IMG/VR virus record: IMGVR_UViG_3300020473_000010
Location: 62,001-126,000 of that record
Direction: 5' to 3' (one strand)
DNA length: 64,000 bases
In this document: positions 17,046 to 34,755 of the stretch, piece after piece
How the letters are laid out: every line of letters starts with the position of its first letter
Numbering within the stretch: position 1 is the first letter of the stretch
Position numbers and translations under genes: made by a program
The notes under the pieces: generated by a model
What the model was told of the DNA's origin: nothing
What the model saw: the letters and a program-made list of their open reading frames with translations, nothing else
Databases searched by the model: none

Positions 17046-17046
17046 T

Positions 17047-18399: not shown

Positions 18400-18411
18400 A
18401 TTAACCTCGTT

Positions 18412-18678
18412 TTAGTTATCATATCCGTCGTCGCCGATAGCGTATACTGGACATTGATCAATTGCTTCGATACAATCTAAAAGTTCTTCTTCGTTTTCTG
18501 GCTGCTTATATACGTAATCATGACAACCGTCTTCGCTTTGTTCAAAATTATCCGGGGCTACTTGCGAACAAACATGACAAAAAATACATTCTTTATCGAC
18601 ATAAAACGAGTATTTCTGCCCATTATATTCTACTGTTCCTTCAATGTTGTCATGAAATTTTTCTTTGGGATCTGCCAT
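18412..18678 (-). CDS. Ferredoxin (single-cluster type)
   Basis: YVDKECIFCHVCSQVAP...CPVYAI; start 18678 overlaps upstream TAA. Confidence 0.9.
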   Translation of the reverse strand: MADPKEKFHDNIEGTVEYNGQKYSFYVDKECIFCHVCSQVAPDNFEQSEDGCHDYVYKQPENEEELLDCIEAIDQCPVYAIGDDGYDN

Positions 18679-19115
18679 TACCATTCTTCCTTTTGGCCGA
18701 CCCAATCTTGGAATTGGTCTTTTCCTCCTCTGATTCCCCAATCTGAATCTACTGTTAATTTTGAAGAAATTCCTCCTCGAGGATTACAAACCAAAACCAA
18801 TCGTAGCCTTGCAGGTTCATATGTAGCCATCATATCATCATAAATCACATTAATGATTCTTTCGTACGAAAATATTTGATTTCTGAAAGCAAAAAAATAT
18901 TCTTTTAAGGATTTTAATTCAACTACTTTTGCAGATGGATAAATTGTAATATATAAAATACCAAAATCAGGTTGGCCTCTTACTCCTTCAAAAGTAAGTT
19001 CTGGTATTTTCATTTTTATTTCATATGCTTCTTTCGACGGGTTTGGGATAGACTTTAATATGTGTCTATTTTTTGCCCAATTTCTTTTTCTTTTTTTGGC
19101 TGATGTTTCATTCAT
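18678..19115 (-). CDS. queF: QueF-like T-fold protein lacking the catalytic Cys
   Basis: GQPDF, VELKSLKEY, FRN, YE, NPRGGI; the FTSLCP segment reads LTFEGV; likely start 19115. Confidence 0.8.
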   Translation of the reverse strand: MNETSAKKRKRNWAKNRHILKSIPNPSKEAYEIKMKIPELTFEGVRGQPDFGILYITIYPSAKVVELKSLKEYFFAFRNQIFSYERIINVIYDDMMATYEPARLRLVLVCNPRGGISSKLTVDSDWGIRGGKDQFQDWVGQKEEW

Positions 19116-19377
19116 CGTGCCCCCAATTACAATCGCAAGGCGTGCATTCACACGCACTACAATAATCATTGTCTAGCATTAATTTCCCCTTTTGTGTTAG
19201 TGTAATATTAAACATTGGTGCTAATCGGCCGGTACCAATAACATAGTTAACCATTTGCTCAGATTTTAATTCTTCCAAAATAGTTATTATGTTTTCTCCA
19301 AAATCTATTATAAGAGATTTTTTTGATCGATCATGATTTAATAATGATTTTAAAATTCTTGATTTAAGACCATTCAT
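19108..19377 (-). CDS. Winged-helix-like protein with Cys-rich tail
   Basis: LTQKGK wing; CSACECTPCDC; likely start 19377. Confidence 0.55.
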   Translation of the reverse strand: MNGLKSRILKSLLNHDRSKKSLIIDFGENIITILEELKSEQMVNYVIGTGRLAPMFNITLTQKGKLMLDNDYCSACECTPCDCNWGHDE

Positions 19378-19757
19378 ACACCCAAATCCTCCATCATTGA
19401 ACACAAGCAATTAATACAATAAATGTGGTCAGAAGGAATAGATAAAATCTTTGAATTTTCTAAATGAAAATTTGTTTCACAAGAGACGCAAGATGCTAAC
19501 CCATTAAACAAATCTAAAGTAGATATAAGTTTAATAGCATCTAGATCTCGAGATTTCTGCAATTTATATTCATCGTTTAAATTGCATTTAATTTTTGATA
19601 AATGTCCTGAAAGATTTCTCCGCCATCTGATTTCGTCTTTATTGTTATCCATACTATCAGGTCCCCATATGGATACTATTAATTTCCTAATTGAAACCCA
19701 GTTTCCTGATTCACTTTTAAGAATATTAAATATTTCTTTTGTTTTTCCAGATAGCAT
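19374..19757 (-). CDS. Winged-helix DNA-binding protein with C-terminal Zn finger
   Basis: IFNILKSESGNWVSIRKLIVSIWG (OmpR-like), CVSC...CINC. Confidence 0.6.
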   Translation of the reverse strand: MLSGKTKEIFNILKSESGNWVSIRKLIVSIWGPDSMDNNKDEIRWRRNLSGHLSKIKCNLNDEYKLQKSRDLDAIKLISTLDLFNGLASCVSCETNFHLENSKILSIPSDHIYCINCLCSMMEDLGV

Positions 19758-19783
19758 TTTAACCTCCAGCTTATTATATTCAT

Positions 19784-19812
19784 ATTATATAGGCTTGTAA
19801 GGTTTTTTACAA
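19784..19812 (-). promoter_or_regulatory. Promoter TTGTAA-N17-TATAAT
   Basis: Exact 17-bp spacer upstream of GGAGG RBS and ATG 19757. Confidence 0.7.
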
Positions 19813-19878
19813 AGACTTTCCCGCTAAAAATCCCTCGGTCTCCGACCCGCTCCACCGCCCGCTGTTTCGAAAGTCTTT
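19811..19878. repeat. GC-rich element: 10-bp inverted repeat enclosing three CCCGCT copies
   Basis: aaagactttc (19811-20) / gaaagtcttt (19869-78); cccgct at 19820, 19846, 19858. Confidence 0.7.
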
Positions 19879-20521
19879 ATCTTTTCGTTGTTATGATATT
19901 GACGTCATATTCTTCAATCGATTTTATTTTTCCTTGTCCTTCACACGGGAAACAAATTCCGGATAAAATTTTCCCTCTTCCGTAGCAGAGAGAACATGGT
20001 GTTGATGTTTTTACCATGGTTGGACCTTGTTTTTCTAATCTGTTAATATATCCTGTGCCAAAACAATCTTTACAAGAATGAGAAATATCTCCTCCTTTTC
20101 CATTACAAGCAGAACAGGTTTTGGTTATTCTCACTTTCACAGAAGTTGTTTTTCCTCCGGAAAATAATTCATCTATTGTTAAATCTAAATTAATCTTTTT
20201 TGATGGTTGGTCTTTTTGATTCATTTGATGATTAACCCTAAATAACGGATCAAATGGATTAAATCCAAAATCTTTAAACAGATCCTCGAAGGAATTAAAA
20301 GATTGATGGTTGTTGGAGATTGCAAAATCATGTTCTTGCCTTTTCTGTGGGTCGCTCAAAACGCTGTAAGCTTCACTCACCTCCTTAAAACGTTCGGCGG
20401 CATCCTCATCTCCCTGGTTTCTATCCGGATGGTATTTTTTTGCTAAATCTCTATAAGCTTTTTTAATATCTTTTTCATTAGCAAATGTTTCAACACCCAA
20501 GATTGTATAAAAATCTTTCAA
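19877..20521 (-). CDS. dnaJ: DnaJ-type co-chaperone (J domain + Zn finger, C-terminal domain truncated)
   Basis: HPD motif, four CxxCxGxG repeats; TTG start with GGAGG. Confidence 0.9.
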
Positions 20522-20573
20522 TTGTTCCTCCGAGGATCATAATATTAATTATGGAGAAAATCTTATTCAATCC

Positions 20574-21083
20574 TCAGATGGGGGATTTCGGAAAATATCT
20601 GCATTCAAAATATGGATAATAATCATCAATATTTCCGGTACCAATTAAAGCCCATATATGATTATCTCTAAGATCTAAAATTACATAACCATTAAAATCA
20701 TTATTTATTTCTTTCCTCCAAGAGATTTTATCAGATGTTATTAACCGTATTTTTGCTATTGGGTTTGGGAAAAAAATATAGTTATGATCTTGTAGCGGAA
20801 TTCTAGCGGCGCCTAAATAAGATCGATATCCATCATCCGGATCTTCAAGAATTTCGAAAATCATATCATTTAATTTTATGGCATTGTGATCCATTCCATA
20901 AAAATCATATTCTCCTCCTACCATAGAAATAAAACAGTCTGTTGAAAATTTTATATCTGGAATTAATTCAGTACTAACGCTTTCTGGGAGAGTGGAATCG
21001 TGTATTCGATTATAATCTCCATCACAATTGTTACTTGAAATATATCCTTTAAATTTGTTGTTTAGGTTCACTTTTATAGCCAT
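20574..21083 (-). CDS. Hypothetical phage protein
   Basis: 169 aa ORF; FEILEDPDDGYRSYL, IGTGNIDDYYP. Confidence 0.7.
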   Translation of the reverse strand: MAIKVNLNNKFKGYISSNNCDGDYNRIHDSTLPESVSTELIPDIKFSTDCFISMVGGEYDFYGMDHNAIKLNDMIFEILEDPDDGYRSYLGAARIPLQDHNYIFFPNPIAKIRLITSDKISWRKEINNDFNGYVILDLRDNHIWALIGTGNIDDYYPYFECRYFPKSPI

Positions 21084-21084
21084 T

Positions 21085-21297
21085 TTAAGCCTTGGTTAAA
21101 ATTTCTCTAGGAATTGCCTCAAAAATTTTACCGTCAATTAAAACATCATAAACTAAAATAATTTCTTTGTATTTTGCTGTTTTTCTATATTCTGATTCGT
21201 AAGGTCCTTTAATTATTATTCCTGTTTTATTTAATAAATTTTGATTGAAATGATAATAGTCATTTCTAGCAATGGTGACTAATAACCCAACCCGCAT
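21085..21297 (-). CDS. Small SH3-like protein
   Basis: MRVGLLV...GIIIKGP...YDVLIDG. Confidence 0.65.
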   Translation of the reverse strand: MRVGLLVTIARNDYYHFNQNLLNKTGIIIKGPYESEYRKTAKYKEIILVYDVLIDGKIFEAIPREILTKA

Positions 21298-21527
21298 ATG
21301 TCGTGATCCTTTTCTAAATCGATATCATCACTAAATATAGCTCTTAAAATTCCATCATCACACAAAACCGAGAAATATGTTGGGGGAGTTTTTTTAGGAA
21401 TTTCTATTAGAAGCCCATAACCACCATTAACAACAATCATATCGTGGCTATATTCATACCAATGAACTCTATTCCCTGTCTCAAAAGTTATTTTTCTTCG
21501 AGGGCATGTCCATTTAATTTTGTTCAC
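21279..21527 (-). CDS. Small SH3-like protein
   Basis: FETGNRV...YGLLI...FSVLCDDG. Confidence 0.55.
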   Translation of the reverse strand: MNKIKWTCPRRKITFETGNRVHWYEYSHDMIVVNGGYGLLIEIPKKTPPTYFSVLCDDGILRAIFSDDIDLEKDHDICGLGY

Positions 21528-22149
21528 TTGAAAAAGCCATCATGTTTAATGTTAAAAATTCAATTTGATTTAGAGAATTTTCAATATTTTGTTCATAGTT
21601 TTCTATTTGCTGTTTTGAGCGATTAATACTTTTTCGGTGTTCCTGTATTTTATCATTCATTGCTCGAATAAATGGAGATTGATCACCTTTCCAAATAGGT
21701 GTTCTTCCCCCTCTAACTTCCGGAGTTTCGCCTTTACATTGAGCCATATACATCATTTTGGCAATTTGCTGGGCGCCAGATTCGTCTGTTGCTACTACAT
21801 AACCAATAGAATTCCAGGATCCGTCTTTTACTTCCCATAGGTAATTACACCTAAGTGAATTCCGGAATGTTCTTAAGATGCGATTTAGATTTTCTTCTAG
21901 CCTATTTGAGCGATATGTTAGAGATTGTTTGTTTCCCTGTTGCCACATATCTTTGTCTTGAAACTGTTGTTCTTCTACAAGTCCTCTGGCACTCCAGGTG
22001 ACTCTAGGATATCTTTCATCCCGTATAATACCAATAAAGGCTGCAGCTTTATAATATTGTTCATAAAGATTAATATCGGTAAAATTAGGGGCTTTGTATC
22101 GTTTTTTGATTAGTGGTTTTACTAAATTCCATATTGTTTCTGAATTCAT
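21514..22149 (-). CDS. Hypothetical protein with C-terminal coiled coil
   Basis: Likely start ATG 22149 (MNSETIW). Confidence 0.7.
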   Translation of the reverse strand: MNSETIWNLVKPLIKKRYKAPNFTDINLYEQYYKAAAFIGIIRDERYPRVTWSARGLVEEQQFQDKDMWQQGNKQSLTYRSNRLEENLNRILRTFRNSLRCNYLWEVKDGSWNSIGYVVATDESGAQQIAKMMYMAQCKGETPEVRGGRTPIWKGDQSPFIRAMNDKIQEHRKSINRSKQQIENYEQNIENSLNQIEFLTLNMMAFSSEQN

Positions 22150-22153
22150 TTTT

Positions 22154-22948
22154 TTACCTTTTGTTAATTCGGTCGGCGGGCCAGGGTTGGCATTGACCAT
22201 TTAGAAGAACATCATATCCAATATTTTTTCTATGAATTAAAGGTGGAGAACAAATTATTCCAAACAATTTTTCAGTAACCCAATCTCCATTTTCGTTGCG
22301 AATATCGGTTTTTATAAAACATTTATCTCCTGGTGCAAACTTTGGTTCTTCAATCATCTTTAACTTTCCTCGGACAGCGTGTTTTGCACTTTCCCAAGTT
22401 TTTTCGAGAATATAATCATCCAATCCTTGAATATATCTTTTTAGTTGCCTAATTGCTCGCGATCCGGCGGCATGAGTTTGCCAATATATTTCGGAATAAC
22501 AAGGGCTTAACCGACAAACTAAATTCATTTTTTTTCTAGTTTCTTCATTAGGTTCCCAATGTCCATTATTTTCAATTTCACGAGCTTGCTGAAGTAATTG
22601 TTCAGCAAAATTTGCTTGTTTTTCAGTAAGGGTTCTTCCCTGTCTTAGCCTTGTAGCAAACGACAGAAGCGCTTCTGATAAGCGTCTATCGATTAAGAAA
22701 GTCGACAGCCTCTGCATTTCATCTGCTTCTGCATTATCTGGTACTGGTTTTATACCACCATCAATTAGTTCATCAATTTTTGAACGCATTTTTTTAGTCA
22801 AAGCTTTGCCTCTAGTCATTCTAAGAATCATTGCTTCAATGAAACTATAATCCCATTGGTGTAGCGACTTGGATGCTTGGTTATTGTTATATCCTTCCTT
22901 CAAGGTTTCGAGCTGTTGTTTTCTAAGTACGGCAGATTTTCTAGCCAT
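22154..22948 (-). CDS. Hypothetical protein with C-terminal SH3-like domain
   Basis: Likely start 22948 (GGAG RBS); repeated LTxKQ helices; FAPGDKC...YDVLLNG. Confidence 0.75.
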   Translation of the reverse strand: MARKSAVLRKQQLETLKEGYNNNQASKSLHQWDYSFIEAMILRMTRGKALTKKMRSKIDELIDGGIKPVPDNAEADEMQRLSTFLIDRRLSEALLSFATRLRQGRTLTEKQANFAEQLLQQAREIENNGHWEPNEETRKKMNLVCRLSPCYSEIYWQTHAAGSRAIRQLKRYIQGLDDYILEKTWESAKHAVRGKLKMIEEPKFAPGDKCFIKTDIRNENGDWVTEKLFGIICSPPLIHRKNIGYDVLLNGQCQPWPADRINKR

Positions 22949-22977
22949 TTTTACTCCGTGGTTGTTTTTATATATAT

Positions 22978-23006
22978 AATTTAACGCATCGAAACGATTT
23001 CTGCAC
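22978..23006 (-). promoter_or_regulatory. Promoter GTGCAG-N17-TAAATT
   Basis: 17-bp spacer upstream of ATG 22948. Confidence 0.5.
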
Positions 23007-23298
23007 ACTTATTATGATAATTTTCTATATTTTCTATTAATTCAGGGGCAATTTTTTCAAATCCTTTTTCTGTTAATAACCATTTTCCTCTTTTGGGACT
23101 ATGCCAATATTTGGTAGGATATCCTCTATGATTTTTTCTACCATAAAAATAACTAGTAGCCCAGCCTCTTTCTGAAAAACTGTTTAAATTTCCGTGCTTA
23201 CTAAAATATAGCGCTCGACGAATATCAGCTCCCGAACAAAGTGGATATCGAAAAATATATGTGGCAATAAAATTTATATTATTCAACTTCTTGAGCAT
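22981..23298 (-). CDS. Hypothetical protein (winged-helix-like)
   Basis: 105 aa; WLLTEKG wing-like motif. Confidence 0.6.
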   Translation of the reverse strand: MLKKLNNINFIATYIFRYPLCSGADIRRALYFSKHGNLNSFSERGWATSYFYGRKNHRGYPTKYWHSPKRGKWLLTEKGFEKIAPELIENIENYHNKCAEIVSMR

Positions 23299-23593
23299 TT
23301 AATTCCTCCAGGTCTGCAAGGTATAGTTCATGTTGCCGGGCACAAGCCATGGCGTGGTCCATAAATACCTGTTTAGGTACATCTGGTGTGGCCTTTATGA
23401 CACAGTAGGCACCAGGCACATATGTAGCTTTAGAATCTTTCGATATGTCCATAGAACGCGTTGTGGCAATCACGTCTATAGCTTCATCAATTTTCATTGC
23501 TTGAGACCAGCTATATAGCGAAAACCAGACAGCAATGAAGATAATAAACCAATTGTCTTTAAACCAATCCCATAATTCTAAAATTTTTTTCAT
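23279..23593 (-). CDS. Membrane-anchored hypothetical protein
   Basis: N-terminal TM; ATGA coupling to uvsE. Confidence 0.65.
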   Translation of the reverse strand: MKKILELWDWFKDNWFIIFIAVWFSLYSWSQAMKIDEAIDVIATTRSMDISKDSKATYVPGAYCVIKATPDVPKQVFMDHAMACARQHELYLADLEELNAQEVE

Positions 23594-24513
23594 TTTTGTT
23601 CTCCATGAATTTTTCGATAATTTTTCACTGCTAATTCTTTTCCTTTTGCTTCAATCACAACGTCGATATCTAAACCATGGGGATTTATAAACCCTGTAAC
23701 ATATTTAGAATGAGCTCGAAACATTGCTTTTGGATTATCAACCTGGGCTGTTTCTGAATAATGGGTGCATTGTTTAGAGTCTGACCAAGTAGAAGCTGCT
23801 AAGTGTAATGCTGTTTGTTCATCGTCTTGACCAGGATGGCACAAATGATGATGATAATCAAAAACAATAGGGATCCCGGTCCTAGAATAGAATAATTCAT
23901 ATAAGTCTCGAGTTGAATAAAGATTTGGACGATCGTCGTTTTCCAATGTAAGACGAGAAAGTACGGAATTAGAAAGGCGCTTAGAATTATTGATCCAGCG
24001 AAGAGCAGCCGCAGATTTGTCACCATAAGAACCCCCAACATGAATATTTATTTTTGCCATATGTGATCTAGGCTGATGCATATAGTCCATAATTTTACCA
24101 TGGGTTTCCAATTCGTTAATCGATTTTTCAACTGTTTCTTGATTGTGTCCAGCTAGAACCGTAAATGCACCAGGATGGAAAGATAAACGAATATTATTAT
24201 TTAATGCAAATTTTCCGCATTTGCTCAATAATTCTTTACATTCTTGCCAATTAGGTAAGTCTTCTAAATTATATTCAGAACACCATGGAGCCATTGATGA
24301 TGACATTCTATAAAGAAATATTTTATTATCTACATTCCATTCTAGAATTCTTTTTACGGCTTTTAAATTAATAGCAAATAATTCTCCTGCATGTTTTGTC
24401 CCCTTTTTAAGGAAAGTACTTTTTCTACATGTCCGACCGACTGTTATATTTTCTTTTTCAGCTAGCGTCATATTAATGCACGCATAGCCGAGATTGGTTG
24501 AGCCTCGTTTCAT
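23590..24513 (-). CDS. uvsE: UV-damage endonuclease (UvsE/UvdE)
   Basis: LGYACIN, LYRMSS, RLSFHPG, INIHVGG, LTLENDD, FDYHHH, HYSE, EAKGKE. Confidence 0.92.
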   Translation of the reverse strand: MKRGSTNLGYACINMTLAEKENITVGRTCRKSTFLKKGTKHAGELFAINLKAVKRILEWNVDNKIFLYRMSSSMAPWCSEYNLEDLPNWQECKELLSKCGKFALNNNIRLSFHPGAFTVLAGHNQETVEKSINELETHGKIMDYMHQPRSHMAKINIHVGGSYGDKSAAALRWINNSKRLSNSVLSRLTLENDDRPNLYSTRDLYELFYSRTGIPIVFDYHHHLCHPGQDDEQTALHLAASTWSDSKQCTHYSETAQVDNPKAMFRAHSKYVTGFINPHGLDIDVVIEAKGKELAVKNYRKIHGEQK

Positions 24514-24536
24514 TTATTCTCCTTGGTTGCATATTT

Positions 24537-24565
24537 ATTATATAAGAATTGTTCAATATTTACAA
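24537..24565 (-). promoter_or_regulatory. Promoter TTGTAA-N17-TATAAT
   Basis: Exact 17-bp spacer upstream of uvsE RBS AAGGAG. Confidence 0.7.
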
Positions 24566-24604
24566 TTTAATTTGTATAAGTTATTTTTGCACAGGTTTTT
24601 AGAA

Positions 24605-24856
24605 ATGCCATATGATTTTAAAGGGAAAAAAGATTGTACCCAAAAAAATGGAAATAAAGGAAAATACTTGACCATTAAAAAAAATGGATCTAGGAAATGT
24701 TATAAGTCCAAAGAACAGTATGATGCTGCCATGGCATGGGCTCATGAATCTGATGATAAAGCTGATGAAAAAACAGATAAATTTATTTCTTTACTTGAGG
24801 AAAATTTATTAAGAAGATGGATTTCTTTTATTATATCTTCGGGAGAAAAACCATGA
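24605..24856 (+). CDS. Small basic protein with C-terminal LLEE...W motif
   Basis: Likely start ATG 24605 (MPYDFKGKK). Confidence 0.6.
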   Translation: MPYDFKGKKDCTQKNGNKGKYLTIKKNGSRKCYKSKEQYDAAMAWAHESDDKADEKTDKFISLLEENLLRRWISFIISSGEKP

Positions 24857-25203
24857 TTGGAATTTTGATGCTATTGATATCATGCGCAAAAGAACCTTTA
24901 ACACCAGCTGCGGCAAGATCATATTTCCAAGGACCTGAATGTTTAAAAATACTTAAAGAAAAAATGATGGAAGCTGGATGTCCAAAATTACAGTATCAAA
25001 TTTTAGGTACTAACGATACGATGCTTCGGTGTCATAAACCAGAAAAAGAAAGAGGAAAATTTTGGGATAATTATATATTTAGAATATCACCTTCAAATTT
25101 GCAATATGATACCAAATCGCAAATCATGATTGAAAAACATACTATATGTTCTAATTCACATATAAGAATCGAAGCTTATCCTCCGCCACCTCAGGAAAAA
25201 TAA
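24853..25203 (+). CDS. Small lipoprotein
   Basis: MIGILMLLISC lipobox from 24853; GGGAG RBS. Confidence 0.7.
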   Translation: MIGILMLLISCAKEPLTPAAARSYFQGPECLKILKEKMMEAGCPKLQYQILGTNDTMLRCHKPEKERGKFWDNYIFRISPSNLQYDTKSQIMIEKHTICSNSHIRIEAYPPPPQEK

Positions 25204-25207
25204 GATA

Positions 25208-26221
25208 ATGCCAGTTGCCAATAAGAAAAACCTAATGCTAGATAGACCAACATCACATGGTGGTTGGCCAGGAGGACCTAACGACTGGTGGGGTGGAAAT
25301 AAATCAGTATCTGATACAATTTATGATTATTTAAAAGACATGGGACTAGTTGCTGAAAGTGACCTAAGAAAATTAATATCTGAAATAATTTTAGATATTG
25401 AGAATTCTCCAAGATTATCAGAATGTGTCGTAGCAGCTGGGCAAACCCAGGGCCAAAACGTTCTAGCGAAAACTAGAGACAGAAATTATAAACCAGAAGT
25501 AAAAATTATCAGAGAATTGCTTGATGATGGAACTGAAATTGTTTATATGATCGATTTAAAAACAGGATTTTTAGAAGGCATGAATAATCATGGTGTTGGA
25601 ATTTTAAATTCAACACTCATGGTTTACGAAGATGAAAACCCTTTAGAGCATGGAACTCAAAAAGATTATGGGAAAATTATTAAAAAAGCTTTGAAAAGCA
25701 AGAATTCAGAGAAAGCAGTGGAGATTTTGTGTAATAGTGGCGAGGGAGTTGAAGGTCATACATTTGTTGGGTGTCCAGACTTTTTACACTCTGTAGAAAG
25801 AACAAAGCATCATGATTCAATTGTTAGTCGACTAAATCCATTATCCAACTTTGAAGTAAGGACAAACCATGGAAATTATTATCCTTCAGCTGGATATACT
25901 GAAAAAGAAAAACCAGATGATTATTTATCAAGCAAAATTAGGAAAGCAACAGTTGAATTAAGCCTTAGTGGCATTAATGATTATTCTCAAATAGCTAGAT
26001 CTCTTTTATCTAGAAAATTTAATAAAGACTCAAATAAAAATACCCTGAGAAGGACAAATAATCTTCGAACAACTTCCCAGATTACAATGAATCTTCCAAA
26101 AAGAGAATTTTTATTTTACGTCTTTCCATCAGAATGCAAATTTTTAGGATTAGAAGATTTAACACCGGTAGATCACCAACCCTCTATCAAGATTAGAATG
26201 TTTAATTGGAAAGGAGACTAA
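25208..26221 (+). CDS. Ntn-hydrolase (peptidase C45/AAT-like) with 72-residue propeptide
   Basis: RLSE-CVVAAG...VLAKTRDRNY, EGMNNHGVGILNSTL, RTNHG. Confidence 0.75.
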   Translation: MPVANKKNLMLDRPTSHGGWPGGPNDWWGGNKSVSDTIYDYLKDMGLVAESDLRKLISEIILDIENSPRLSECVVAAGQTQGQNVLAKTRDRNYKPEVKIIRELLDDGTEIVYMIDLKTGFLEGMNNHGVGILNSTLMVYEDENPLEHGTQKDYGKIIKKALKSKNSEKAVEILCNSGEGVEGHTFVGCPDFLHSVERTKHHDSIVSRLNPLSNFEVRTNHGNYYPSAGYTEKEKPDDYLSSKIRKATVELSLSGINDYSQIARSLLSRKFNKDSNKNTLRRTNNLRTTSQITMNLPKREFLFYVFPSECKFLGLEDLTPVDHQPSIKIRMFNWKGD

Positions 26222-26556
26222 TCCTTTTCGTCATGTTCGTGCTGGTGCTCTTTAATCGATTCAATTAACCTAGCAGGAATATGATTGAACGTTCCGCATT
26301 TAAATTGAATATTATAATAATTTATAGTCCCGTTTTTCTCTAAATCATGGTGGACTATTTTTCCGATCGGGTTACCGGTAATTCCTAAAGCTTCTCTTAA
26401 AGATTCATCCTGAATCTTACCATGAGTAAGTCATGTATGGCCAATCAGTGGGTGGTCTTCTGTTTCTTTGGCTTGGCGCATTCCGGTGCCAAATGGTTCA
26501 AATTCTTCAAGGCTTTCTCTAATAATTCTTTTGAGTTGTCGCTTTGTGATTTTCAT
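26218..26556 (-). CDS. Candidate selenoprotein (112 aa, in-frame TGA at codon 42) with MKITKRQL leader; not in supplied track
   Basis: MKITKRQLKRIIRESLEEFEPFGTGMRQAKETEDHPLIGHT[TGA]LTHGKIQDESLREALGITGNPIGKIVHHDLEKNGTINYYNIQFKCGTFNHIPARLIESIKEHQHEHDEKD-TAG; GGAG RBS; ends flush with the convergent gene. Confidence 0.8.
26391..26430 (-). promoter_or_regulatory. Bacterial SECIS-like hairpin directly 3' of the in-frame UGA
   Basis: CUU(A)CUC/GAGAAG lower stem, AUGGU/UAA internal loop, AAGAUUCA/UGAAUCUU 8-bp upper stem, GGA apical loop 20 nt from UGA. Confidence 0.7.
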
Positions 26557-26780
26557 CTGGTTCTCCTGATGTTTGCTCCTCTCTTTTGATTTGACAAAGC
26601 TAATTCAATTTCATAAATCGCCATCTTTCTATTGAGTCCAGATTTCATCATGTGATCTTGAATAAGCTGCTCAACCATATCTTTGAGATCTTCGAAATGC
26701 TGAGATCCGCCTGATGTTTCTTGGAGCTTTTGTTTTTCTTCTCTAATAATTCTTCTGAGCTGTCTTTTTGTGATTTTCAT
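26553..26780 (-). CDS. MKITKRQL-leader small protein
   Basis: MKITKRQLRRIIREE. Confidence 0.85.
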   Translation of the reverse strand: MKITKRQLRRIIREEKQKLQETSGGSQHFEDLKDMVEQLIQDHMMKSGLNRKMAIYEIELALSNQKRGANIRRTR

Positions 26781-26781
26781 A

Positions 26782-27057
26782 TTATATTTCTTCCAATATT
26801 AATTTCATTGCATGAATGATATCTTCTCTATCATATCCGCTAGAGTCTCTTGGTGACCATGTCATTTTATCAATTATGCTTTCTAGAAGTTTCGTAACCT
26901 TTTCGTAGTCATCTAAATCGAGTAAAGCCGGCTGGTTGTCCGGATGGTCTGGATGAGCTAGAGCTTGATCATCTCTATTTTGCTGAAAGCGTCTATCCCA
27001 TTCTTCTTGTGTGGCTTCTTTAATAATTCTTCTGAGTTGTCTTTTAGTAATTTTCAT
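26782..27057 (-). CDS. MKITKRQL-leader small protein
   Basis: MKITKRQLRRIIKEA. Confidence 0.85.
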   Translation of the reverse strand: MKITKRQLRRIIKEATQEEWDRRFQQNRDDQALAHPDHPDNQPALLDLDDYEKVTKLLESIIDKMTWSPRDSSGYDREDIIHAMKLILEEI

Positions 27058-27081
27058 TTCATTTACCTGATTAATTTGTTG

Positions 27082-27441
27082 TTAAAGCCCTTCATGATAG
27101 TCAACTAAAAGGTCGATCATTTTATCCAGCAGATAATCCATATGTTTTTGAACGCCTAAAGCCATCTCTTGCGGATCCTGCAATTGGTCAATTGACTTAT
27201 ATTCATAATCAGAGCCAACATCTGTGACGCTGAAAGAATACGCTTGGTTCATTGGGTCTTTTTCATCCAAGACTCTTTTCTGCAATTCTTTCCATTCTAG
27301 TCGATACGTCAACAATTGCTTCCTGTCTCCAGGGTGCATATCCCTGGGTGGCATATCATAAAGTGCTGCATCTAGATATTTTTGACGATAATCTGCTACT
27401 TCTCGAATAATTCTTCGAAGTTTTCTCTTTGTAATTTTCAT
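27082..27441 (-). CDS. MKITKRQL-leader small protein
   Basis: MKITKRKLRRIIREV. Confidence 0.85.
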   Translation of the reverse strand: MKITKRKLRRIIREVADYRQKYLDAALYDMPPRDMHPGDRKQLLTYRLEWKELQKRVLDEKDPMNQAYSFSVTDVGSDYEYKSIDQLQDPQEMALGVQKHMDYLLDKMIDLLVDYHEGL

Positions 27442-27453
27442 TTTAATATCTCT

Positions 27454-28887
27454 CTAATCTAAAGTGTATGGGTTTCTAGCTAAATCTATTTTGCCTGATC
27501 TAAAATCTCTTTCTAATTCGCTTGAATCTACAAATCCTCTTTTGATGGGCTCGGGTTCATATGAATCTACACCGTTTTGAAAAAGTGCATCCTCGGCAGC
27601 CTCAAACCATATACTTAATTGGCCTTCATCGTATCCGTATTGGCGGCCGAATTTGACGTATCCTTCCCAGTCTTCATCTTCAGCATACATCTCAGCATGA
27701 TCTTCAACGTACCCAGCTGGTTCTGAAACTGAAGGTACCCGGACATGTTCTATAAGCGCTTTTTTAATAATTCTTTTCAAATGTCTTTTTGTAATTTTCA
27801 TTTCATTTACCTTTAGTGTTTTTAATTTATGTAATTCTTTCTCTATTACTATATTTACTCTTTCTTTAAATTTCTGCATGTACTTGTCACTGGAGATAAG
27901 CAGAGGCCCGAGAGGTTGAATGGAAAACAGTTCATAAAAAGAAGTTACTGGCATTCTTTTTAAAAATCTTTTTGCACCGCGGTACAAAGATGGCTGTCGT
28001 CCGAATGGATTGGTAGATGACGGATTGAATTTTTTTTCTTTAAAAAAGTTTATTTGTTCTTGTATAACTTTTTTTATTTTTATATCCAATGTAGAATAAT
28101 CAAAAGTATCTGTTTTAAATTGATGAGTAATAGTATGTGTATCTAAAATCGGAATATTTATTGTTGGCTTTTCTTGGCCTATTGTTTCAGACGGTAATCC
28201 ACCAACCTCTAAACCCATTTCAAATTCATTTTGGACCATTCTGTCTGCGGCTTCTTTCTCTTCTGGCGAAAGCATAGATCTTATTTCTTTTCTCCATTCA
28301 CGAGCTGGAGCTGATATATCAACTTCCGAAGGCATGTATATAGTTTCTAATATGAGTTTTTTTATCAAAGTTCTTATTCTATTTTCCTCTAAATTTACAA
28401 CACAGACAGAAGAATAGTATATATTTTTACTCATTTCAGAATTATAGGTTTTTACTACATCTTTAAGCATCTCAATATTTTTTCTGCAATCTTCATAGAC
28501 AACAACACGATTATAATCTTCTGACATTAATTTATTAATTAGCCATCTTGCTTTATTTTCAGATCCGCTTGTTGCAATGATTTCCGGAGGTTCAACGCCC
28601 ATCTTTAAAAGAAATCTTTTTACCGGAGGTGCTTCCGACCTTGCGGTAACAATATAAACATTTTCAAACCCAAACTGTTTTATAGCTTGGTCCATGGCAG
28701 AGACGGTTGTTTGTATCAGCTTTCCGTCGGAAACATCCATAAATTCTGAAAAATCTAAATTATCTTTGGGTGATGCCCGATATTTTGCAAACTCTCTTGA
28801 ATTTAATCTTAAAGAATTATTAACGATTACGTGAGAATCAGTAAGCGCTAAAGTATCGTCAAAATCAAATATAAAAAGAGTTTTCAT
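27454..28887 (-). CDS. HAD phosphatase fused to leader-bearing modules (internal MKITK at 27801)
   Basis: FIFDFDDTL, IVTAR, K, VYEDC; internal RIRTLIKKLILE and MKITKRHLKRIIKKALIE. Confidence 0.8.
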   Translation of the reverse strand: MKTLFIFDFDDTLALTDSHVIVNNSLRLNSREFAKYRASPKDNLDFSEFMDVSDGKLIQTTVSAMDQAIKQFGFENVYIVTARSEAPPVKRFLLKMGVEPPEIIATSGSENKARWLINKLMSEDYNRVVVYEDCRKNIEMLKDVVKTYNSEMSKNIYYSSVCVVNLEENRIRTLIKKLILETIYMPSEVDISAPAREWRKEIRSMLSPEEKEAADRMVQNEFEMGLEVGGLPSETIGQEKPTINIPILDTHTITHQFKTDTFDYSTLDIKIKKVIQEQINFFKEKKFNPSSTNPFGRQPSLYRGAKRFLKRMPVTSFYELFSIQPLGPLLISSDKYMQKFKERVNIVIEKELHKLKTLKVNEMKITKRHLKRIIKKALIEHVRVPSVSEPAGYVEDHAEMYAEDEDWEGYVKFGRQYGYDEGQLSIWFEAAEDALFQNGVDSYEPEPIKRGFVDSSELERDFRSGKIDLARNPYTLD

Positions 28888-28893
28888 TTTTTC

Positions 28894-29241
28894 TCAAGGG
28901 TGGTGAATATAGTTCCAGGGCGTAGTATGTTCATCTACTTGATCCTTTGGATAATATATGTATTCAACAATATTTCCGTCTGGATCTTTTACATATAAAT
29001 ATGCACTACCATCTCTATGATACTTAATTTCTCCTTTTGGGAACATATTCATCGAATTTACTTCTATAGCTATATGCGGAGGATGTAAACCTGGAAGAGT
29101 AAGTGCTAATTTAGTGTTTCCAGATCTTAGCATCGCCCATTCGTTATCAAAATATTCTACTGAGAATCCTAGATTATTAGTATACCACTTTAAAGACTCA
29201 TCAATATTTGATACAACAATTGCTACATGATCAATCGGCAT
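28894..29241 (-). CDS. VOC/glyoxalase-family protein
   Basis: IDHVAIVV...WY...LGF, HIAIEV, YVKDPDGNIVE. Confidence 0.88.
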   Translation of the reverse strand: MPIDHVAIVVSNIDESLKWYTNNLGFSVEYFDNEWAMLRSGNTKLALTLPGLHPPHIAIEVNSMNMFPKGEIKYHRDGSAYLYVKDPDGNIVEYIYYPKDQVDEHTTPWNYIHHP

Positions 29242-29764
29242 TTTTTCTCCTGGCTATTGATTCTAACCGGTTTCTAATTAAAATATATTTTATCGCTTCT
29301 TTTTTATTTCCTTTATAGACTTTTCTAGTTCCTAAAAGACGGTCAAAAACAGAACTCCTTACTCCCCAATTAGCATGCTGATTAGGAGCTAAATGGTGGT
29401 CATAATGATGAGATAAATTATCTCTAGCCCATGAAATATCTTGGTGAGCTTTTCTATGTACCCACCAATATTCAACTGCACAAAGTAAAAGCGTAAGATA
29501 AGCCCATGGAAACCAATATGATATGGGTAAATGAATAATTCCTAAAACAATTAATCCTTTTATTTCCGGGTCTCCTTTTATACTTGCTTTTTGCAAATAT
29601 TTTGGATCAATCATTAAATATTTTCTCGAGGTTTTGTGGTGATCTCCAAAATGACTTTTGAAAAACTTTTTTCGTTTTGGGTTATGCAATATATATCGAT
29701 GCAAAACCCACTCGAGTAAATGTGAATATAAATAAGCAAACAAAAATTGAAAAATAATAAACAT
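29231..29764 (-). CDS. Fatty acid hydroxylase/sterol desaturase-family membrane di-iron enzyme
   Basis: EWVLHRYILH, HH, WVHRKAH, HHYDHH, NWGV. Confidence 0.8.
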   Translation of the reverse strand: MFIIFQFLFAYLYSHLLEWVLHRYILHNPKRKKFFKSHFGDHHKTSRKYLMIDPKYLQKASIKGDPEIKGLIVLGIIHLPISYWFPWAYLTLLLCAVEYWWVHRKAHQDISWARDNLSHHYDHHLAPNQHANWGVRSSVFDRLLGTRKVYKGNKKEAIKYILIRNRLESIARRKNAD

Positions 29765-29810
29765 AAAATTTCCTCCCTTCTAATATAAATAAGGATTGAA
29801 TTATAATGTT

Positions 29811-30059
29811 TTATTTTTCATTTAATAAAATACAAAGTTTTTCTAAATTATTTATTCTGTCTGATAATTCTGTAAGCAATATCTCTGTAGAAATAGGAAA
29901 GATAGCTCCTTCACCCTCTGCTCTACTAACAAGATCTGCAGCAATATCATCAGTTGGGATTATCATTACAGAAATTAATTGGTCAGGATCATAAAAATAT
30001 TTTTCTTCTTTGGTTTCTGGTTTTTTTAAAAAATTTTTTAAATGAATTAATTCGCCCAT
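29811..30059 (-). CDS. Hypothetical protein
   Basis: 82 aa ORF, MGELIHL start. Confidence 0.6.
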   Translation of the reverse strand: MGELIHLKNFLKKPETKEEKYFYDPDQLISVMIIPTDDIAADLVSRAEGEGAIFPISTEILLTELSDRINNLEKLCILLNEK

Positions 30060-30062
30060 AAT

Positions 30063-30305
30063 CTAGATTCTCTCTTCTAAATCAACAATGTCTAAATGTG
30101 CCAATACTCTCGCCAGTGACCAACCGTCATCCATTAATGCATCCGCAATATCCCAAAATGCGTCTTTATTAAGGCTTTCTGGGCGATTTGCTAATCTCTC
30201 AATAATATCATGCAAACAAGAAAGCTGTTTTTTATGAGATAATTCGTCATACCTTCTTTCAAGGTAACGAACTACTCGAGATGTTTCCGGATCTTTCAGC
30301 TGCAT
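30063..30305 (-). CDS. Hypothetical protein
   Basis: 80 aa helical ORF. Confidence 0.6.
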   Translation of the reverse strand: MQLKDPETSRVVRYLERRYDELSHKKQLSCLHDIIERLANRPESLNKDAFWDIADALMDDGWSLARVLAHLDIVDLEERI

Positions 30306-30537
30306 TTTGTGTCCCGTTTGGTGATATCATAATCGCTAATTGTTCTTCAAGTTGCTGGTAAACAATTTTAGCTATAGCGGTTTCTTTTTCATCGTTGTTT
30401 TCTTTTATAAAATTTTCTAATTCTTCCATTTCCTCTAGAAGTTGCTGAAAAACATGTGCACGCGCTAATCCTTGTGTGAATTTTTCTGCTGATTTATGAG
30501 CTTTGGCAAAAGGGCCGACGGTGAAAAAACCTGACAT
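30259..30537 (-). CDS. Hypothetical protein
   Basis: 92 aa ORF, AAGGA RBS. Confidence 0.6.
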   Translation of the reverse strand: MSGFFTVGPFAKAHKSAEKFTQGLARAHVFQQLLEEMEELENFIKENNDEKETAIAKIVYQQLEEQLAIMISPNGTQNAAERSGNISSSSLP

Positions 30538-30560
30538 ATAAGTTTCCTTGGCTATATTAC

Positions 30561-31124
30561 TTAAATATGTTTCTTCGCTTTCTTCTGCTGTCTTTCTTTC
30601 TTTTTTTGTATTTTCCGAAGTTTAGACAACATCAACGAACCTGAGGGTCTTGACATGCGTTTGTTAAACGTAACCCCGTCTAGATGATCACATTCATGCT
30701 GAATAGCACCTGATAAAGGCCAAGAAGCTTCTAGTGTTTTTTGTTCTCCAAACTCATTTTGATATTTGACTAATACATTGCTTCCTCTTTTGACTTTTCC
30801 TTGAACACCTTTAAGAGATAAGCACTGCTCTATCCATGCTATTTCATCTCCGGAAATTTCTATTTTTGGGTTAATCATTGCAATAAAATCTTTATTGTAA
30901 TTACACGGTTCAAATTCTTCATAACCCATTGATTTTGGTTTAAGAACTACAACCCTTTGTAAAACACCAATTTGATTAGCTGCTAAACCAGCACCATAAT
31001 CAATGTTACACGTATCAACCATGTCCTTGATTAATGATTGTAATTTTTCTCCAAAATCGTCTACTGTTTTTGCTTTTTTAAACAGTTTAGAATTAGGCCA
31101 CTGCAAGACATTTCTATAAGTCAT
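30561..31124 (-). CDS. def: Peptide deformylase
   Basis: GAGLAANQIG, EQCLS (EGCLS variant), QHECDHLDG. Confidence 0.93.
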   Translation of the reverse strand: MTYRNVLQWPNSKLFKKAKTVDDFGEKLQSLIKDMVDTCNIDYGAGLAANQIGVLQRVVVLKPKSMGYEEFEPCNYNKDFIAMINPKIEISGDEIAWIEQCLSLKGVQGKVKRGSNVLVKYQNEFGEQKTLEASWPLSGAIQHECDHLDGVTFNKRMSRPSGSLMLSKLRKIQKKKERQQKKAKKHI

Positions 31125-31139
31125 AAATCCTCCATAAAT

Positions 31140-31295
31140 TTATTCTACATGACTTGGGCTATTTTTATAACCAATATAACAAAGTATTCCACATGCAGCT
31201 GTAAACAAAGATCCGGAAAGGTCCTGGGCAAAAACGTGGGCCATTAATAAAAACACGTTAATAAAAACCGCAGATAGATAAATAGTTTTCATCAT
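31140..31295 (-). CDS. Small membrane protein (51 aa, below track cutoff)
   Basis: MMKTIYLSAVFINVFLLMAHVFAQDLSGSLFTAACGILCYIGYKNSPSHVE; ATGA overlap. Confidence 0.55.
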   Translation of the reverse strand: MMKTIYLSAVFINVFLLMAHVFAQDLSGSLFTAACGILCYIGYKNSPSHVE

Positions 31296-31561
31296 TTTTT
31301 TGTGGGTGCTTTTCTTTTATAAGTTCTCTTTTTTGTTGCTGGTTTTTTCTTTGCCTCTTTTTTAGGGGAACTTTTTTCTATTTTTGGCTTAGGAGGAAAG
31401 GCTTTTAATTTTGCTTGCTCATAATATTTTTTTGAAGGAGGGGAAATTTTTTGGTTTTCACACCACTCTTCTAGAAGTTTGTAATTTTGCATTTTGTTGT
31501 TTTTTATAAAAGAAGGGAAATCAATATTTCTTCTTTTTTCGTAAAAATTCCATGGAATCAT
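31292..31561 (-). CDS. Small basic protein
   Basis: Lys/Pro-rich C-terminal tail. Confidence 0.7.
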   Translation of the reverse strand: MIPWNFYEKRRNIDFPSFIKNNKMQNYKLLEEWCENQKISPPSKKYYEQAKLKAFPPKPKIEKSSPKKEAKKKPATKKRTYKRKAPTKK

Positions 31562-31852
31562 TTAACTCTCCGGTGCGTTCATAAGATCTATCATTTCTTT
31601 TCTATGGCATTCGATCATTTTCATCATTATTTTAGATTGTCTAAAACCTAATTTTTTTTCAAGTTTTGTTTCAATACTAATAAATATATCTTTATAAGAT
31701 TGTCCACAAATAGATTCATTTTGTAAAACTTCAGAAAATACTGAAAGGGACGAAGATAAAAGATCTTCGTCCCAATCGCACGCTTCTAGAAGTTCAGTTT
31801 GCAATGACAAATTTGTTAGGCTATGTTTAACTAAATCAAATATCGACACCAT
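31562..31852 (-). CDS. Hypothetical protein
   Basis: 96 aa coupled ORF. Confidence 0.6.
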   Translation of the reverse strand: MVSIFDLVKHSLTNLSLQTELLEACDWDEDLLSSSLSVFSEVLQNESICGQSYKDIFISIETKLEKKLGFRQSKIMMKMIECHRKEMIDLMNAPES

Positions 31853-32111
31853 AACTTTTGTCCTTGATAAGTGCAGCTATAGCTGTTTGGAATCTTGTAT
31901 CAGCCGCGATTTCTTTTGCTGGCCGGCCTGTAATTTCTTCCATTGGTTTAGCTAGTTTGACCATTGCACGCATAAAATAATTTCTTGCGGAAGCGTGGTT
32001 CATTTTATGTCCGGAAGCAGTCATTATTTCAGAAATTTCTCTGTATCCTTTTCCTATTCCGGCTACAGTGGCATAACCATGTTCATGTTTCATTCCTTTA
32101 GGCATACTCAT
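31836..32111 (-). CDS. Stand-alone sigma region-4.2-like HTH protein
   Basis: GYREISEIM...HASARNYFMRAMVKLA resembles TLEEVG...RERIRQIEAKALRKL; TAATG-coupled to sigma. Confidence 0.6.
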   Translation of the reverse strand: MSMPKGMKHEHGYATVAGIGKGYREISEIMTASGHKMNHASARNYFMRAMVKLAKPMEEITGRPAKEIAADTRFQTAIAALIKDKSYGVDI

Positions 32112-32848
32112 TATTTTTCTCCTTGTGATTGTGTAGTTTGATATTCTTCTGCATCATCATCCTCGGAAATTCCAAACCTTAGACGAAGTACTCGCTCTTC
32201 TTGTGGCTTGAGAGATTTAAAAGCTGACCTAATAAGAAACATCATTTTTTTATGATCTATTTCTCTATCTAAATCTGGGGCTTCTTCATCTTCGATTAAA
32301 TCAGCGTAAGTTCTACCTCCTTCAATTCCGCCAACTGGGCTATTGATGTCAATTGGCCATTGCATTCCTAGTCTTAGATTTTGTACTTGTTCTTCTTTTA
32401 CGCCGAGCAAATTTGCAACTTCAGAATTTGAAGGCATAATCCCAAATTCTTCTTCGTATTCTTTCCTGATATTGTTAATTTTCCATATTAGGTGTCTAGA
32501 GCCAGCTGGGAATTTAATATGTCCTTGAGCGGCTAAATATCTTCGAATTGATTGCTTAATCCACCAACAAGCATATGTTGAAAAGCGAAAACCTTTTTTC
32601 CAATCGAATCTATCAACAGCTTTTATCAAACCAATATTTGCTTCTTGAATAAGATCTTCTAGAGGGAATCCTGTTGCTTTATAATTATTGGCTAAAGATA
32701 AAGCTAATCTGAGGTTTGAAGATATCATCAAATCTCTTGCATTCGAATCCCCTTTCTCGATTTTTTGAGCCAAGGTTTTTTCTTGTTGTTTTGTAAGTAG
32801 TTTAAAACTTCCTACATCATCGTAATATGCTGACAAAGTATCTGGCAT
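32111..32848 (-). CDS. Sigma70-family factor (regions 1.2-4.1; region 4.2 missing)
   Basis: NLRL, DLIQEANIGLIKAVDRFD, GFRFSTYACWWIKQSI, EERVLRLRFGI then ends. Confidence 0.92.
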   Translation of the reverse strand: MPDTLSAYYDDVGSFKLLTKQQEKTLAQKIEKGDSNARDLMISSNLRLALSLANNYKATGFPLEDLIQEANIGLIKAVDRFDWKKGFRFSTYACWWIKQSIRRYLAAQGHIKFPAGSRHLIWKINNIRKEYEEEFGIMPSNSEVANLLGVKEEQVQNLRLGMQWPIDINSPVGGIEGGRTYADLIEDEEAPDLDREIDHKKMMFLIRSAFKSLKPQEERVLRLRFGISEDDDAEEYQTTQSQGEK

Positions 32849-32893
32849 ATGTTCTCCTTTTGGTTGAATGAAAATGTGTTAATCACACTATAT

Positions 32894-32922
32894 AATTTAA
32901 TCACATTTTGGTTGAGTTACAC
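32894..32922 (-). promoter_or_regulatory. Promoter GTGTAA-N17-TAAATT upstream of sigma gene
   Basis: 17-bp spacer; nearby direct repeats TGTGATTAA x2 and TCAACCAAAA x2. Confidence 0.55.
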
Positions 32923-32940
32923 CCTTTTTTAGTAAATAAA

Positions 32941-33123
32941 TTAATTTTTTTGGTCCTCTATATTTTGGATATTTTGTTGTACATAACAAATATCAATTTG
33001 TAATTTTTGAGATAATTTATAATTTTTCTTTTTTCTTGTTTCTTTTAGTTTTTTAAATAATTCGTTTTCTAATGCTTTTAATTGTGCCAAATCCATTTTT
33101 TCAATTTCCATTTTTAACCTCAA
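32941..33123 (-). CDS. Small coiled-coil protein
   Basis: 60 aa heptad-like ORF. Confidence 0.55.
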   Translation of the reverse strand: MRLKMEIEKMDLAQLKALENELFKKLKETRKKKNYKLSQKLQIDICYVQQNIQNIEDQKN

Positions 33124-33132
33124 ATCTCCTGG

Positions 33133-34755
33133 TTATTCATATAGTTTTGTATCTGACTCTTCTTCTTCTTCTCGTACAGAATGCATTGCGCATGCAACTG
33201 AAAGTAAATTATCTGCAGCAGAAGTAGCATGTTTTACTGCTGAGACAACAACCAATGTTGGATCAATTACTCCTTTTTCGTATAGATTAACCCATTCTCC
33301 AGATCTTGCATCATAGCCCAATGGGGATTTTCGCTCTAAGGTTTTTTCAACAATGATATCTGGAACTTGTCCTGCATTTGTAGCAATTTGCCTTATGGGT
33401 TCCTCACAGGCTTTTACCATAATATTAAAACCGGTCAAATAATCATCGCTTAATTTTGTAGTAATTGATTTAGATACCCTCAATAAAGCTGCGCCACCTC
33501 CATCTAATATTCCGGAAGTTACGGCAGCTTTTGTGGCATAAAGGGCATCTTCTACTCTATCCTTTCGTTCTCTTAATTCCGCTTCTGTTGATCCTCCTAC
33601 TCGTAAAATAGCAACTCCTCCGGCTAGTCTAGCTAGTCTTCGACGCTGCATTGCTTCTTCGTCTGTTGTCATTGTCAATGAATCTAGATTGTTTCGTATT
33701 TCTTTACAATGCTTTTCTAGATCTTTTGATTCACAATTAGATCCAACGATTATAGTTTCGTTTCTACCAATTATAATTCTTTCGCAAGTCCCTAAATCTG
33801 ATGGAAGAATTTTTGCTAATTCGTTTTCTTCGCTTGAAGTTATTACCCTTGTTCCCAATAGGGTTGCAAGATCTTGCATGGCAAATACTCGAGATTGACC
33901 GAATTCTGGAGCACGAATTACACAACAATTTAGTATTCCTTTTACAGAATTTAAAACAAATCCTTTTAAAGCTTCTCCCTCCATATCTTCAGCAATTACT
34001 AAAATTGATTTACCTAATTGGTGGATTTTTTCTAACAAAGGAACTAATTCTTTCACTGAAGAGAATGATCGATTTGCCAATAAAACCAACGGTTTTTCAA
34101 GCACACAAGTATTCCTGTTTTTATCATTTATAAAATACGGGGAAAGATAACCTCTATTTAATCTTGTTCCTTCGACTTTTGTAAGAGTTGTTTTAAAGCC
34201 TTTTGCTTCTTCAACCGTAATAATTCCATCTCTACCCACTGCTTCCATAGCTTCGCATAGATATTTTCCAATCTCTTCTTCACCGTTTGCGCTAATCGTT
34301 CCAACCTGGATAATCTCTTCGTTTGTTTTAACTTTTTTACTTCTTTTATAAATTTGTTCTATTATCTGAGTGGAAGCTTGTTTAATCCCATTTCTGACTT
34401 TTACGGGATTATGGCCGGCATTAATTGCTTTTAGCCCTTTTTCAAAAAGCGAGTATGCCAGAACCGTTGCTGTAGTAGTACCATCGCCGGCGATATCTGC
34501 AGCTCCTTGTGCAGCTTCTTTAACTAGTTGTACCCCCAAGTTTTGCATCCTATCTGGAAGATTAACAGACTTGGCAACTGTTACGCCATCTTTGGTTAAG
34601 ATAGGTATTTTCCCAGGTCTTTCAATAACGACATTTAAACCGCCCGGGCCCATTGTAACCCTAACAGCATCTGTTAGTTGCTTTACTCCAATCAGTAAAA
34701 TATTCCTGGCTTCTTCGTCAAAAACTAATTTTTTTGGAACGTTGTCGATATTCAT
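33133..34755 (-). CDS. groL: Chaperonin GroEL
   Basis: TMGPGG, TKDGVTVAK, AGDGTTTATV, RLAGGVA, GGGAAL, GVIDP. Confidence 0.97.
   Translation of the reverse strand: MNIDNVPKKLVFDEEARNILLIGVKQLTDAVRVTMGPGGLNVVIERPGKIPILTKDGVTVAKSVNLPDRMQNLGVQLVKEAAQGAADIAGDGTTTATVLAYSLFEKGLKAINAGHNPVKVRNGIKQASTQIIEQIYKRSKKVKTNEEIIQVGTISANGEEEIGKYLCEAMEAVGRDGIITVEEAKGFKTTLTKVEGTRLNRGYLSPYFINDKNRNTCVLEKPLVLLANRSFSSVKELVPLLEKIHQLGKSILVIAEDMEGEALKGFVLNSVKGILNCCVIRAPEFGQSRVFAMQDLATLLGTRVITSSEENELAKILPSDLGTCERIIIGRNETIIVGSNCESKDLEKHCKEIRNNLDSLTMTTDEEAMQRRRLARLAGGVAILRVGGSTEAELRERKDRVEDALYATKAAVTSGILDGGGAALLRVSKSITTKLSDDYLTGFNIMVKACEEPIRQIATNAGQVPDIIVEKTLERKSPLGYDARSGEWVNLYEKGVIDPTLVVVSAVKHATSAADNLLSVACAMHSVREEEEESDTKLYE

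Follow-up and report, generated by a model that had tools for sequence, protein, structure and literature searches.

A small gene interrupted by an in-frame TGA

The stretch analyzed here (hereafter the window) comprises 64,000 nucleotides of the uncultured 289-kb marine phage IMGVR_UViG_3300020473_000010 (288,697 bp). On its minus strand, positions 26556..26218 form a single reading frame of 41 codons, a TGA (26433..26431), 70 codons and a TAG (26220..26218). The start codon ATG (26556..26554) overlaps the TGA stop of the upstream gene (ATGA) and is preceded by a GGAG ribosome-binding site at 26566..26563, while the end of the frame overlaps the convergent gene 25208..26221 by 4 nt. The first part encodes 41 residues that begin with the leader MKITKRQLKRIIRE (26556..26515) and end in PLIGHT, and the second (26430..26221) encodes 70 residues that begin with LTHGKIQDESLRE and end in HQHEHDEKD, without any Met. 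The TGA, which is the only interruption of the frame, is codon 42 and lies in the motif H40-T41-[TGA]-L43-T44-H45.

Just downstream of the TGA there is a hairpin (26418..26400) formed by AAGAUUCA (26418..26411), a GGA loop (26410..26408) and UGAAUCUU (26407..26400). Counting the U of UGA as nt 1, the 8-bp stem starts at nt 16 and the loop is at nt 24-26, so that 20 nt lie between the UGA and the loop. This combination is not due to chance: of the 2,315 TGA triplets on both strands of the window, 21 are followed by a hairpin of this kind, and only this one also has at least 30 open codons on both sides. The original prediction, made from the sequence alone, was that of a phage-encoded selenoprotein with an in-frame UGA and a bacterial SECIS hairpin, and the observation on which it was based is confirmed. 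It also included a lower stem, CUU(A)CUC/GAGAAG (26430..26424 with 26396..26391), which is present in the window but, as shown below, is doubtful.

TGA is an ordinary stop codon elsewhere in the window. It ends 15 of the 70 long ORFs on the coding (minus) strand, no other gene is split by a TGA, no other selenoprotein gene was found, and the three tRNAs detected are Thr, Leu and Arg, with no suppressor among them. Genome-wide reassignment of TGA (code 4 or 25), in which the codon would be in frame in many genes and rarely used as a stop, was thus rejected.

The window has 35% G+C and encodes a DnaE-type polymerase III alpha subunit, GroEL, DnaJ, a sigma-70 factor, peptide deformylase, AdoHcy hydrolase, Fe/Mn SOD, UvdE, Fpg, QueF, dUTPase, dCMP deaminase and thymidylate synthase. 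It belongs to a jumbo phage of roughly 290 kb that is not T4-like, judging by its polymerase, and a DNA search of the region against 50,697 phage records gave no match; hence, there is no cultured close relative. The leader, with the consensus MKITKRQL[KR]RII[KR]E, heads eight genes in two clusters of the window. Synonymous differences among the copies show that it is conserved at the protein level, and it is very common in IMG/VR contigs, although a tblastn search with a neighboring leader-bearing protein found no match in cultured phages. The original prediction proposed that this leader directs the protein to the virion. T4-type capsid-targeting peptides end in (L/I)-x-E and are cleaved by the prohead protease, and the leader of this gene does end in I-R-E; however, its neighbors are metabolic genes, and no head or protease genes were seen among the top 25 of the 37 Pfam families reported for the 56 larger ORFs of the window. 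There are no proteomic data, and packaging into the virion is untested.

Conserved TGA and cysteine homologs

The two pieces of the protein were searched separately. The 70-residue piece found 17 database proteins, of which the full-length ones show W at the critical position. Their DNA has TGA there, since gene callers had used code 4 on short contigs. Scans for homologous loci added 33 metagenome loci, the 288,697-bp IMG/VR contig, which carries an identical copy of this gene, and a 305,838-bp contig (NHDW01000006.1) binned in a MAG, and all the loci that cover the site have TGA. A scan of 1.8 billion representative proteins, followed by further locus scans, revealed two more subfamilies with the same feature (AHN-TGA-ATHMEWK and EHQ-TGA-MKEGKLSSAL), in addition to the main one (GHT-TGA-LTHGK). 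The subfamilies were scanned separately because a family-wide alignment was too diverse for this purpose. In total, 49 loci from independent metagenomes, representing 39 distinct 45-mers in three divergent subfamilies, keep the same frame across a TGA at this codon, and none has TGG or any other sense codon. Assembly error, which had been raised in advance as something to exclude, is ruled out by this recurrence.

Whether the homologs carry Cys or UGA at position 42, another residue, or the end of the protein had also been set as a criterion beforehand. The eight homologous loci without TGA that we read all have Cys, and none of the homologs ends at this codon. Three uncultured forms have F-H-A-C-A-S/A-H, encoded by TGC or TGT, and one 186-kb viral contig has N-H-Y-C-A-H-H. 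The other four are cultured cyanophages, namely P-SSM7 gp192 (SHDCAS), Syn9 gp185 (THICAK), S-PRM1 (THLCAK) and P-HM2 (PHM2_164; KHSCAT). TGC or TGT was found at the aligned column in these cyanophages and in our loci L038, L040-L043 and L052. The alignment places the TGA column on the Cys column, with H40, H45, H70, H106 and H108 (window numbering) invariant, and an hhalign comparison of the Sec and Cys profiles gives 98% probability and an E value of 2e-13 over 102 columns, again with the TGA column on the Cys column.

The Cys forms match the N-terminal part of phrog_764, annotated as (possible) cytidyltransferase (E value of 7e-10 for one of the Cys forms, P0051), and tblastn finds the domain in 246 cultured T4-like cyanophage records. 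These phages have the same small beta-barrel domain, with the pattern H-x-C ... H-x-L-x-x-D/N-G ... Y-D-V/I ... H-E-H. The cyanophage proteins have Cys and no hairpin, usually lack the MKITK leader, are often fused or adjacent to a nucleotidyltransferase, and carry long acidic or basic tails. The original prediction that T4-like marine phages have related proteins with H-x-C-x-x-H was therefore essentially right, except that the cyanophage proteins that we read have H-x-C-A but K or T in place of the second His. The PHROG links came only through the Cys forms: the C-terminal piece of the window protein alone is weak (tblastn to P-SSM7, E value of 0.06), and neither piece had hits in Pfam or PHROGs.

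An AlphaFold2 model of the Cys form P0051, based on a 25-row alignment, gives a confident core (pLDDT of about 90) consisting of a five-stranded small beta-barrel preceded by a helical leader, with H-x-C in the first strand and H-x-H in the last. A fold search against the PDB gave no significant match (best E value of 0.14), only generic SH3/Tudor/KOW-like barrels, and no function could be transferred. The search of BFVD returned cyanophage proteins (S-CAM9, S-RIM2, P-SSM7, and MED4-213, with E values of about 1e-6).

A covarying hairpin tied to the UGA

Conservation and covariation of the hairpin had likewise been proposed as a test, and both were found. In 32 distinct sequences of the main subfamily, the upper stem is paired in 98% of cells and six of its eight pairs show compensatory changes on both sides. 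None of 500 shuffles reaches the observed values, slid registers pair at only 33-50%, and RNAalifold predicts this stem. Several amino acid changes are themselves compensatory, such as Ile/Ser (A-U), Val/Ser (G-U) and Val/Pro (G-C) at one pair, or Lys-Ile...Glu-Ser changed to Lys(AAA)-Ile(AUC)...Gly-Phe in locus L030. Synonymous divergence falls to a pS of 0.17 in codons +5 to +11 compared to 0.81 in the rest of the downstream ORF, and third-position entropy is 0-0.35 bits there versus 0.9-1.9 bits elsewhere. The lower stem, in contrast, pairs in 82% of cells, has a single double change among its five pairs (in one sequence), and is not predicted by RNAalifold. We consider it unsupported, although codons +12 and +13 also have low synonymous variation.

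All 49 TGA loci have a hairpin of 5-9 bp starting at nt 15-18 (a spacer of 11-14 nt), while none of the eight Cys-form loci has a hairpin of 5 bp or more in that position. The three subfamilies have unrelated stem sequences (AAGRUUCR, AGUGGAA, and AAGCUG) at the same distance, and the loop is at nt 24-26 (GGA, GUC, GGG, GUU, or GGU) or nt 22-25 (AGUU), always with G in the first or second position. As a yardstick we read Escherichia coli fdhF, in which the apical stem starts at nt 15 and the GGUC loop is at nt 22-25. The folding energies of single phage hairpins are not better than those of shuffled sequences, but neither is that of the genuine fdhF element (z-score of -0.01), and the test was discarded as uninformative. 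Rfam gave no SECIS hit, only chance snoRNA-like matches, although bacterial SECIS elements are poorly modeled there; bSECISearch was not run.

The part downstream of the TGA is under purifying selection at the protein level, with a dN/dS of about 0.1 over 62 codons (pS of 0.72-0.81 against pN of 0.20-0.22).

Probable selenocysteine insertion and alternative readings

Considering these data, it is very probable that the gene encodes a 112-residue selenoprotein, with selenocysteine inserted at UGA42 in a SelB-dependent manner into a His-rich small beta-barrel protein of unknown function. The original interpretation is thus supported, since all of its checks that could be run by computation came out in its favor, although the lower stem is weak and this phage is not T4-like. 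The sequence data themselves demonstrate the conserved UGA, its Sec/Cys pairing, the covarying hairpin at a fixed position, purifying selection after the UGA and the use of TGA as an ordinary stop elsewhere in the window, whereas the dependence on SelB, the use of the host SelA, SelB, SelC, and SelD, the role of the site and any packaging role of the leader are inferences; selenium incorporation was not assayed. In the mechanism that we propose, when the ribosome reaches UGA42 the hairpin starting 13 nt further on would sit at the mRNA entrance and recruit the SelB-GTP-Sec-tRNA(Sec) complex of the host, so that translation would continue through the beta-barrel domain. Sec42, within H-x-U-x-x-H, would most likely form a metal-binding or redox site together with the invariant H70 and the C-terminal H-x-H, as a single Sec or Cys surrounded by four invariant His residues suggests. 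Cyanophages use Cys at the same place, presumably because their hosts lack Sec decoding.

The case fulfills the published computational criteria for a new selenoprotein family (Zhang et al. 2007, PMC1976440), namely a TGA conserved in at least two sequences, at least two Cys homologs and a SECIS-like stem-loop. Regarding the Sec machinery, tRNA scans of the window and 25 loci found only Thr, Leu, and Arg tRNAs, and neither tRNA-Sec nor other Sec machinery was found in the window or in the loci retrieved; the rest of the 289-kb genome was not covered. Scans of IMG/VR with E. coli SelD and SelA also found nothing, but they detect only close relatives. No host has been assigned, so its Sec genes were not examined, and the only hint, a weak one, is that the related 306-kb contig is binned in the gammaproteobacterial MAG TMED69 (GTDB UBA11654). 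PHROG scans of the neighbors of the MEWK and EHQ loci were uninformative. According to a 2026 preprint, Pelagibacter genomes lack selC while Actinomarina has the full pathway; therefore, Sec decoding exists in some abundant low-GC marine bacteria but not in SAR11.

Other readings seem unlikely. Programmed read-through by a standard or suppressor tRNA, such as the near-cognate tRNA-Trp in the A1 protein of phage Q-beta, would give a short 41-residue product and a minor full-length one with Trp or another standard residue, the hairpin acting as a pause element. UGA-C, the context in the main subfamily, is leaky, the hairpin sits where a stalling structure would act, and public gene callers already translate the codon as W. 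However, the alternative to TGA is always Cys and never TGG, no suppressor tRNA is present in the window or the loci, the loop always carries a G at the SECIS distance, and we know of no bacterial read-through that depends on a hairpin. Even less likely is decoding as cysteine by a misacylated tRNA-Sec or by a SelB-compatible tRNA-Cys with a UCA anticodon, of the kind described in some deltaproteobacteria (PMC5389517). The homologs show that Cys is functional at this site, but a plain TGC or TGT would do the same at no cost, and keeping the UGA and a hairpin across three diverged subfamilies implies a benefit that Cys does not give; no such tRNA was seen in the sequence available.

It is also conceivable that the UGA is a true stop and that the leader peptide and the beta-barrel domain are separate products, the second made by re-initiation, with the hairpin regulating translational coupling. 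An ATG follows the TGA directly in the EHQ-TGA-M and L036 forms and lies three codons later in the MEWK forms, and gene callers start some database proteins there. Yet, the main subfamily, which includes the window, has no in-frame ATG, GTG, or TTG near the TGA, and a hairpin 13 nt into an ORF would hinder initiation rather than help it. Moreover, the His two codons before the TGA and, in the main and MEWK subfamilies, the His three codons after it are conserved as one motif that is continuous in the Cys forms; we consider this reading improbable. A sequencing error or a pseudogene, suggested only by the bare presence of a stop codon, is refuted by the conservation in 49 loci from many samples and by strong purifying selection on both sides of the TGA.

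Selenocysteine recoding is known from cells and from a few eukaryotic viruses. Literature searches found no report of a phage selenoprotein, although they covered only open-access papers and bioRxiv and absence there is not proof, and the 2026 catalogue of 111 bacterial selenoprotein families (BSepDB) does not mention phages. The mechanism is of a known kind, while the protein family and its location in phages appear to be new. It is probable that this is the first selenoprotein family encoded by bacteriophages, carried by several lineages of uncultured phages, most of those traced coming from marine samples, on viral contigs from about 24 kb up to jumbo contigs of about 290-305 kb. If so, these phages depend on, or themselves supply, the Sec-decoding machinery, and the Sec/Cys state of the gene would be a sequence-only marker of whether the host of an uncultured phage decodes selenocysteine. 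It would also mean that phages can evolve and keep a SECIS inside their own genes, add a new, abundant marine selenoprotein family with an unusual H-x-U-x-x-H site, and offer a compact, naturally diverse set of short SECIS hairpins for recoding studies. In addition, it would expose a systematic annotation error, since public protein sets hold this family either split at the TGA or translated with Trp.

Among known systems, the closest are bacterial selenoprotein genes with an intragenic SECIS, whose prototype is E. coli fdhF (formate dehydrogenase H). The in-frame UGA followed at once by a stem-loop, the position of the stem and the G-containing loop, and the existence of Cys homologs are shared, and the geometry also matches the example shown in BSepDB. 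Some phage loops read GGUCU if the G-U closing pair is left open, or have GUC directly. However, the E. coli element has a bulged U in the upper stem and a G-U in the loop, which are reported to be contacted by SelB (Liu et al. 1998 and work from the Bock laboratory). The phage stems are uninterrupted, and G-U is present in the GUC, GUU, GGU, and AGUU loops but not in GGA, the commonest one; hence, the element is SECIS-like in general rather than a copy of the fdhF type. The protein family is unrelated to any of the 111 in BSepDB, as far as its text shows. The glutathione peroxidases of poxviruses (molluscum contagiosum virus and fowlpox virus) are also virus-encoded selenoproteins that rely on the Sec machinery of the host, but they belong to eukaryotic viruses, have the SECIS in the 3' UTR and derive from a captured cellular GPx, whereas here the element is of the bacterial, intragenic type and the family is phage specific. 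Finally, stop-codon-recoded phages (code 4 or code 15 crAss-like and Lak phages) also have in-frame stops, but in many genes and often together with suppressor tRNAs, while here one codon in one gene is affected and TGA terminates 21% of long ORFs.

A shared, possibly modular N-terminal leader

We found eight genes sharing the N-terminal leader MKITKRQL[KR]RII[KR]E, organized in two clusters on the minus strand of the window. In seven of them, it lies at the start of the gene (47423, 46977, 46734, 27441, 27057, 26780, and 26556), while in the 477-aa ORF 27454..28887 it is internal (27801), 364 residues in. The same pattern, of unknown function, matched more than 592 stretches in IMG/VR contigs. 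In one homologous locus (L002:643-1371), the probable selenoprotein gene is fused in frame to an upstream 171-residue ORF, so that the leader-like RRLRRIIRE is internal, which suggests that the leader-bearing units are modular.

RNA-level features around the proposed Sec codon and the Cys codon

Synonymous sites stay constrained for two to three codons beyond the 3' arm of the SECIS-like hairpin (window 26391..26399, codons +12 and +13 after the TGA), with AGA and GAA almost fixed. The weak lower stem of the original prediction does not fully explain this constraint. One Cys form (NHYCAHH; L052:5001-5321, from the 186-kb IMGVR_UViG_3300003690_000002) has a strong 7-bp hairpin of unknown meaning, which starts directly at the Cys codon (nt 2-24), a different position from that of the SECIS-like hairpins.

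Database annotation and genomic context

Public protein collections hold this family (database proteins P0001-P0014, P0036, and P0009) either with Trp at the proposed Sec codon, because code 4 was chosen on short contigs, or as fragments starting after the TGA. One of these fragments is named "ProFAR isomerase" by a source, which is a misnomer. The same gene, together with a neighboring GroEL-sized ORF, is carried by a contig of a GTDB species-representative MAG (L039; NHDW01000006.1, 305,838 bp, "MAG: Methylococcaceae bacterium TMED69"), which is probably a jumbo-phage genome binned into a bacterial MAG.

A Pfam scan of 56 ORFs from across 2178..63742, whose hits were not mapped to coordinates, showed that the window is dense in host-like auxiliary genes. 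These include S-adenosylhomocysteine hydrolase, Fe/Mn superoxide dismutase, peptide deformylase, DnaJ, GroEL (33133..34755), sigma-70, UvdE (23590..24513), Fpg, QueF, pterin-4a dehydratase, and a DnaE-type polymerase (57578..61165).
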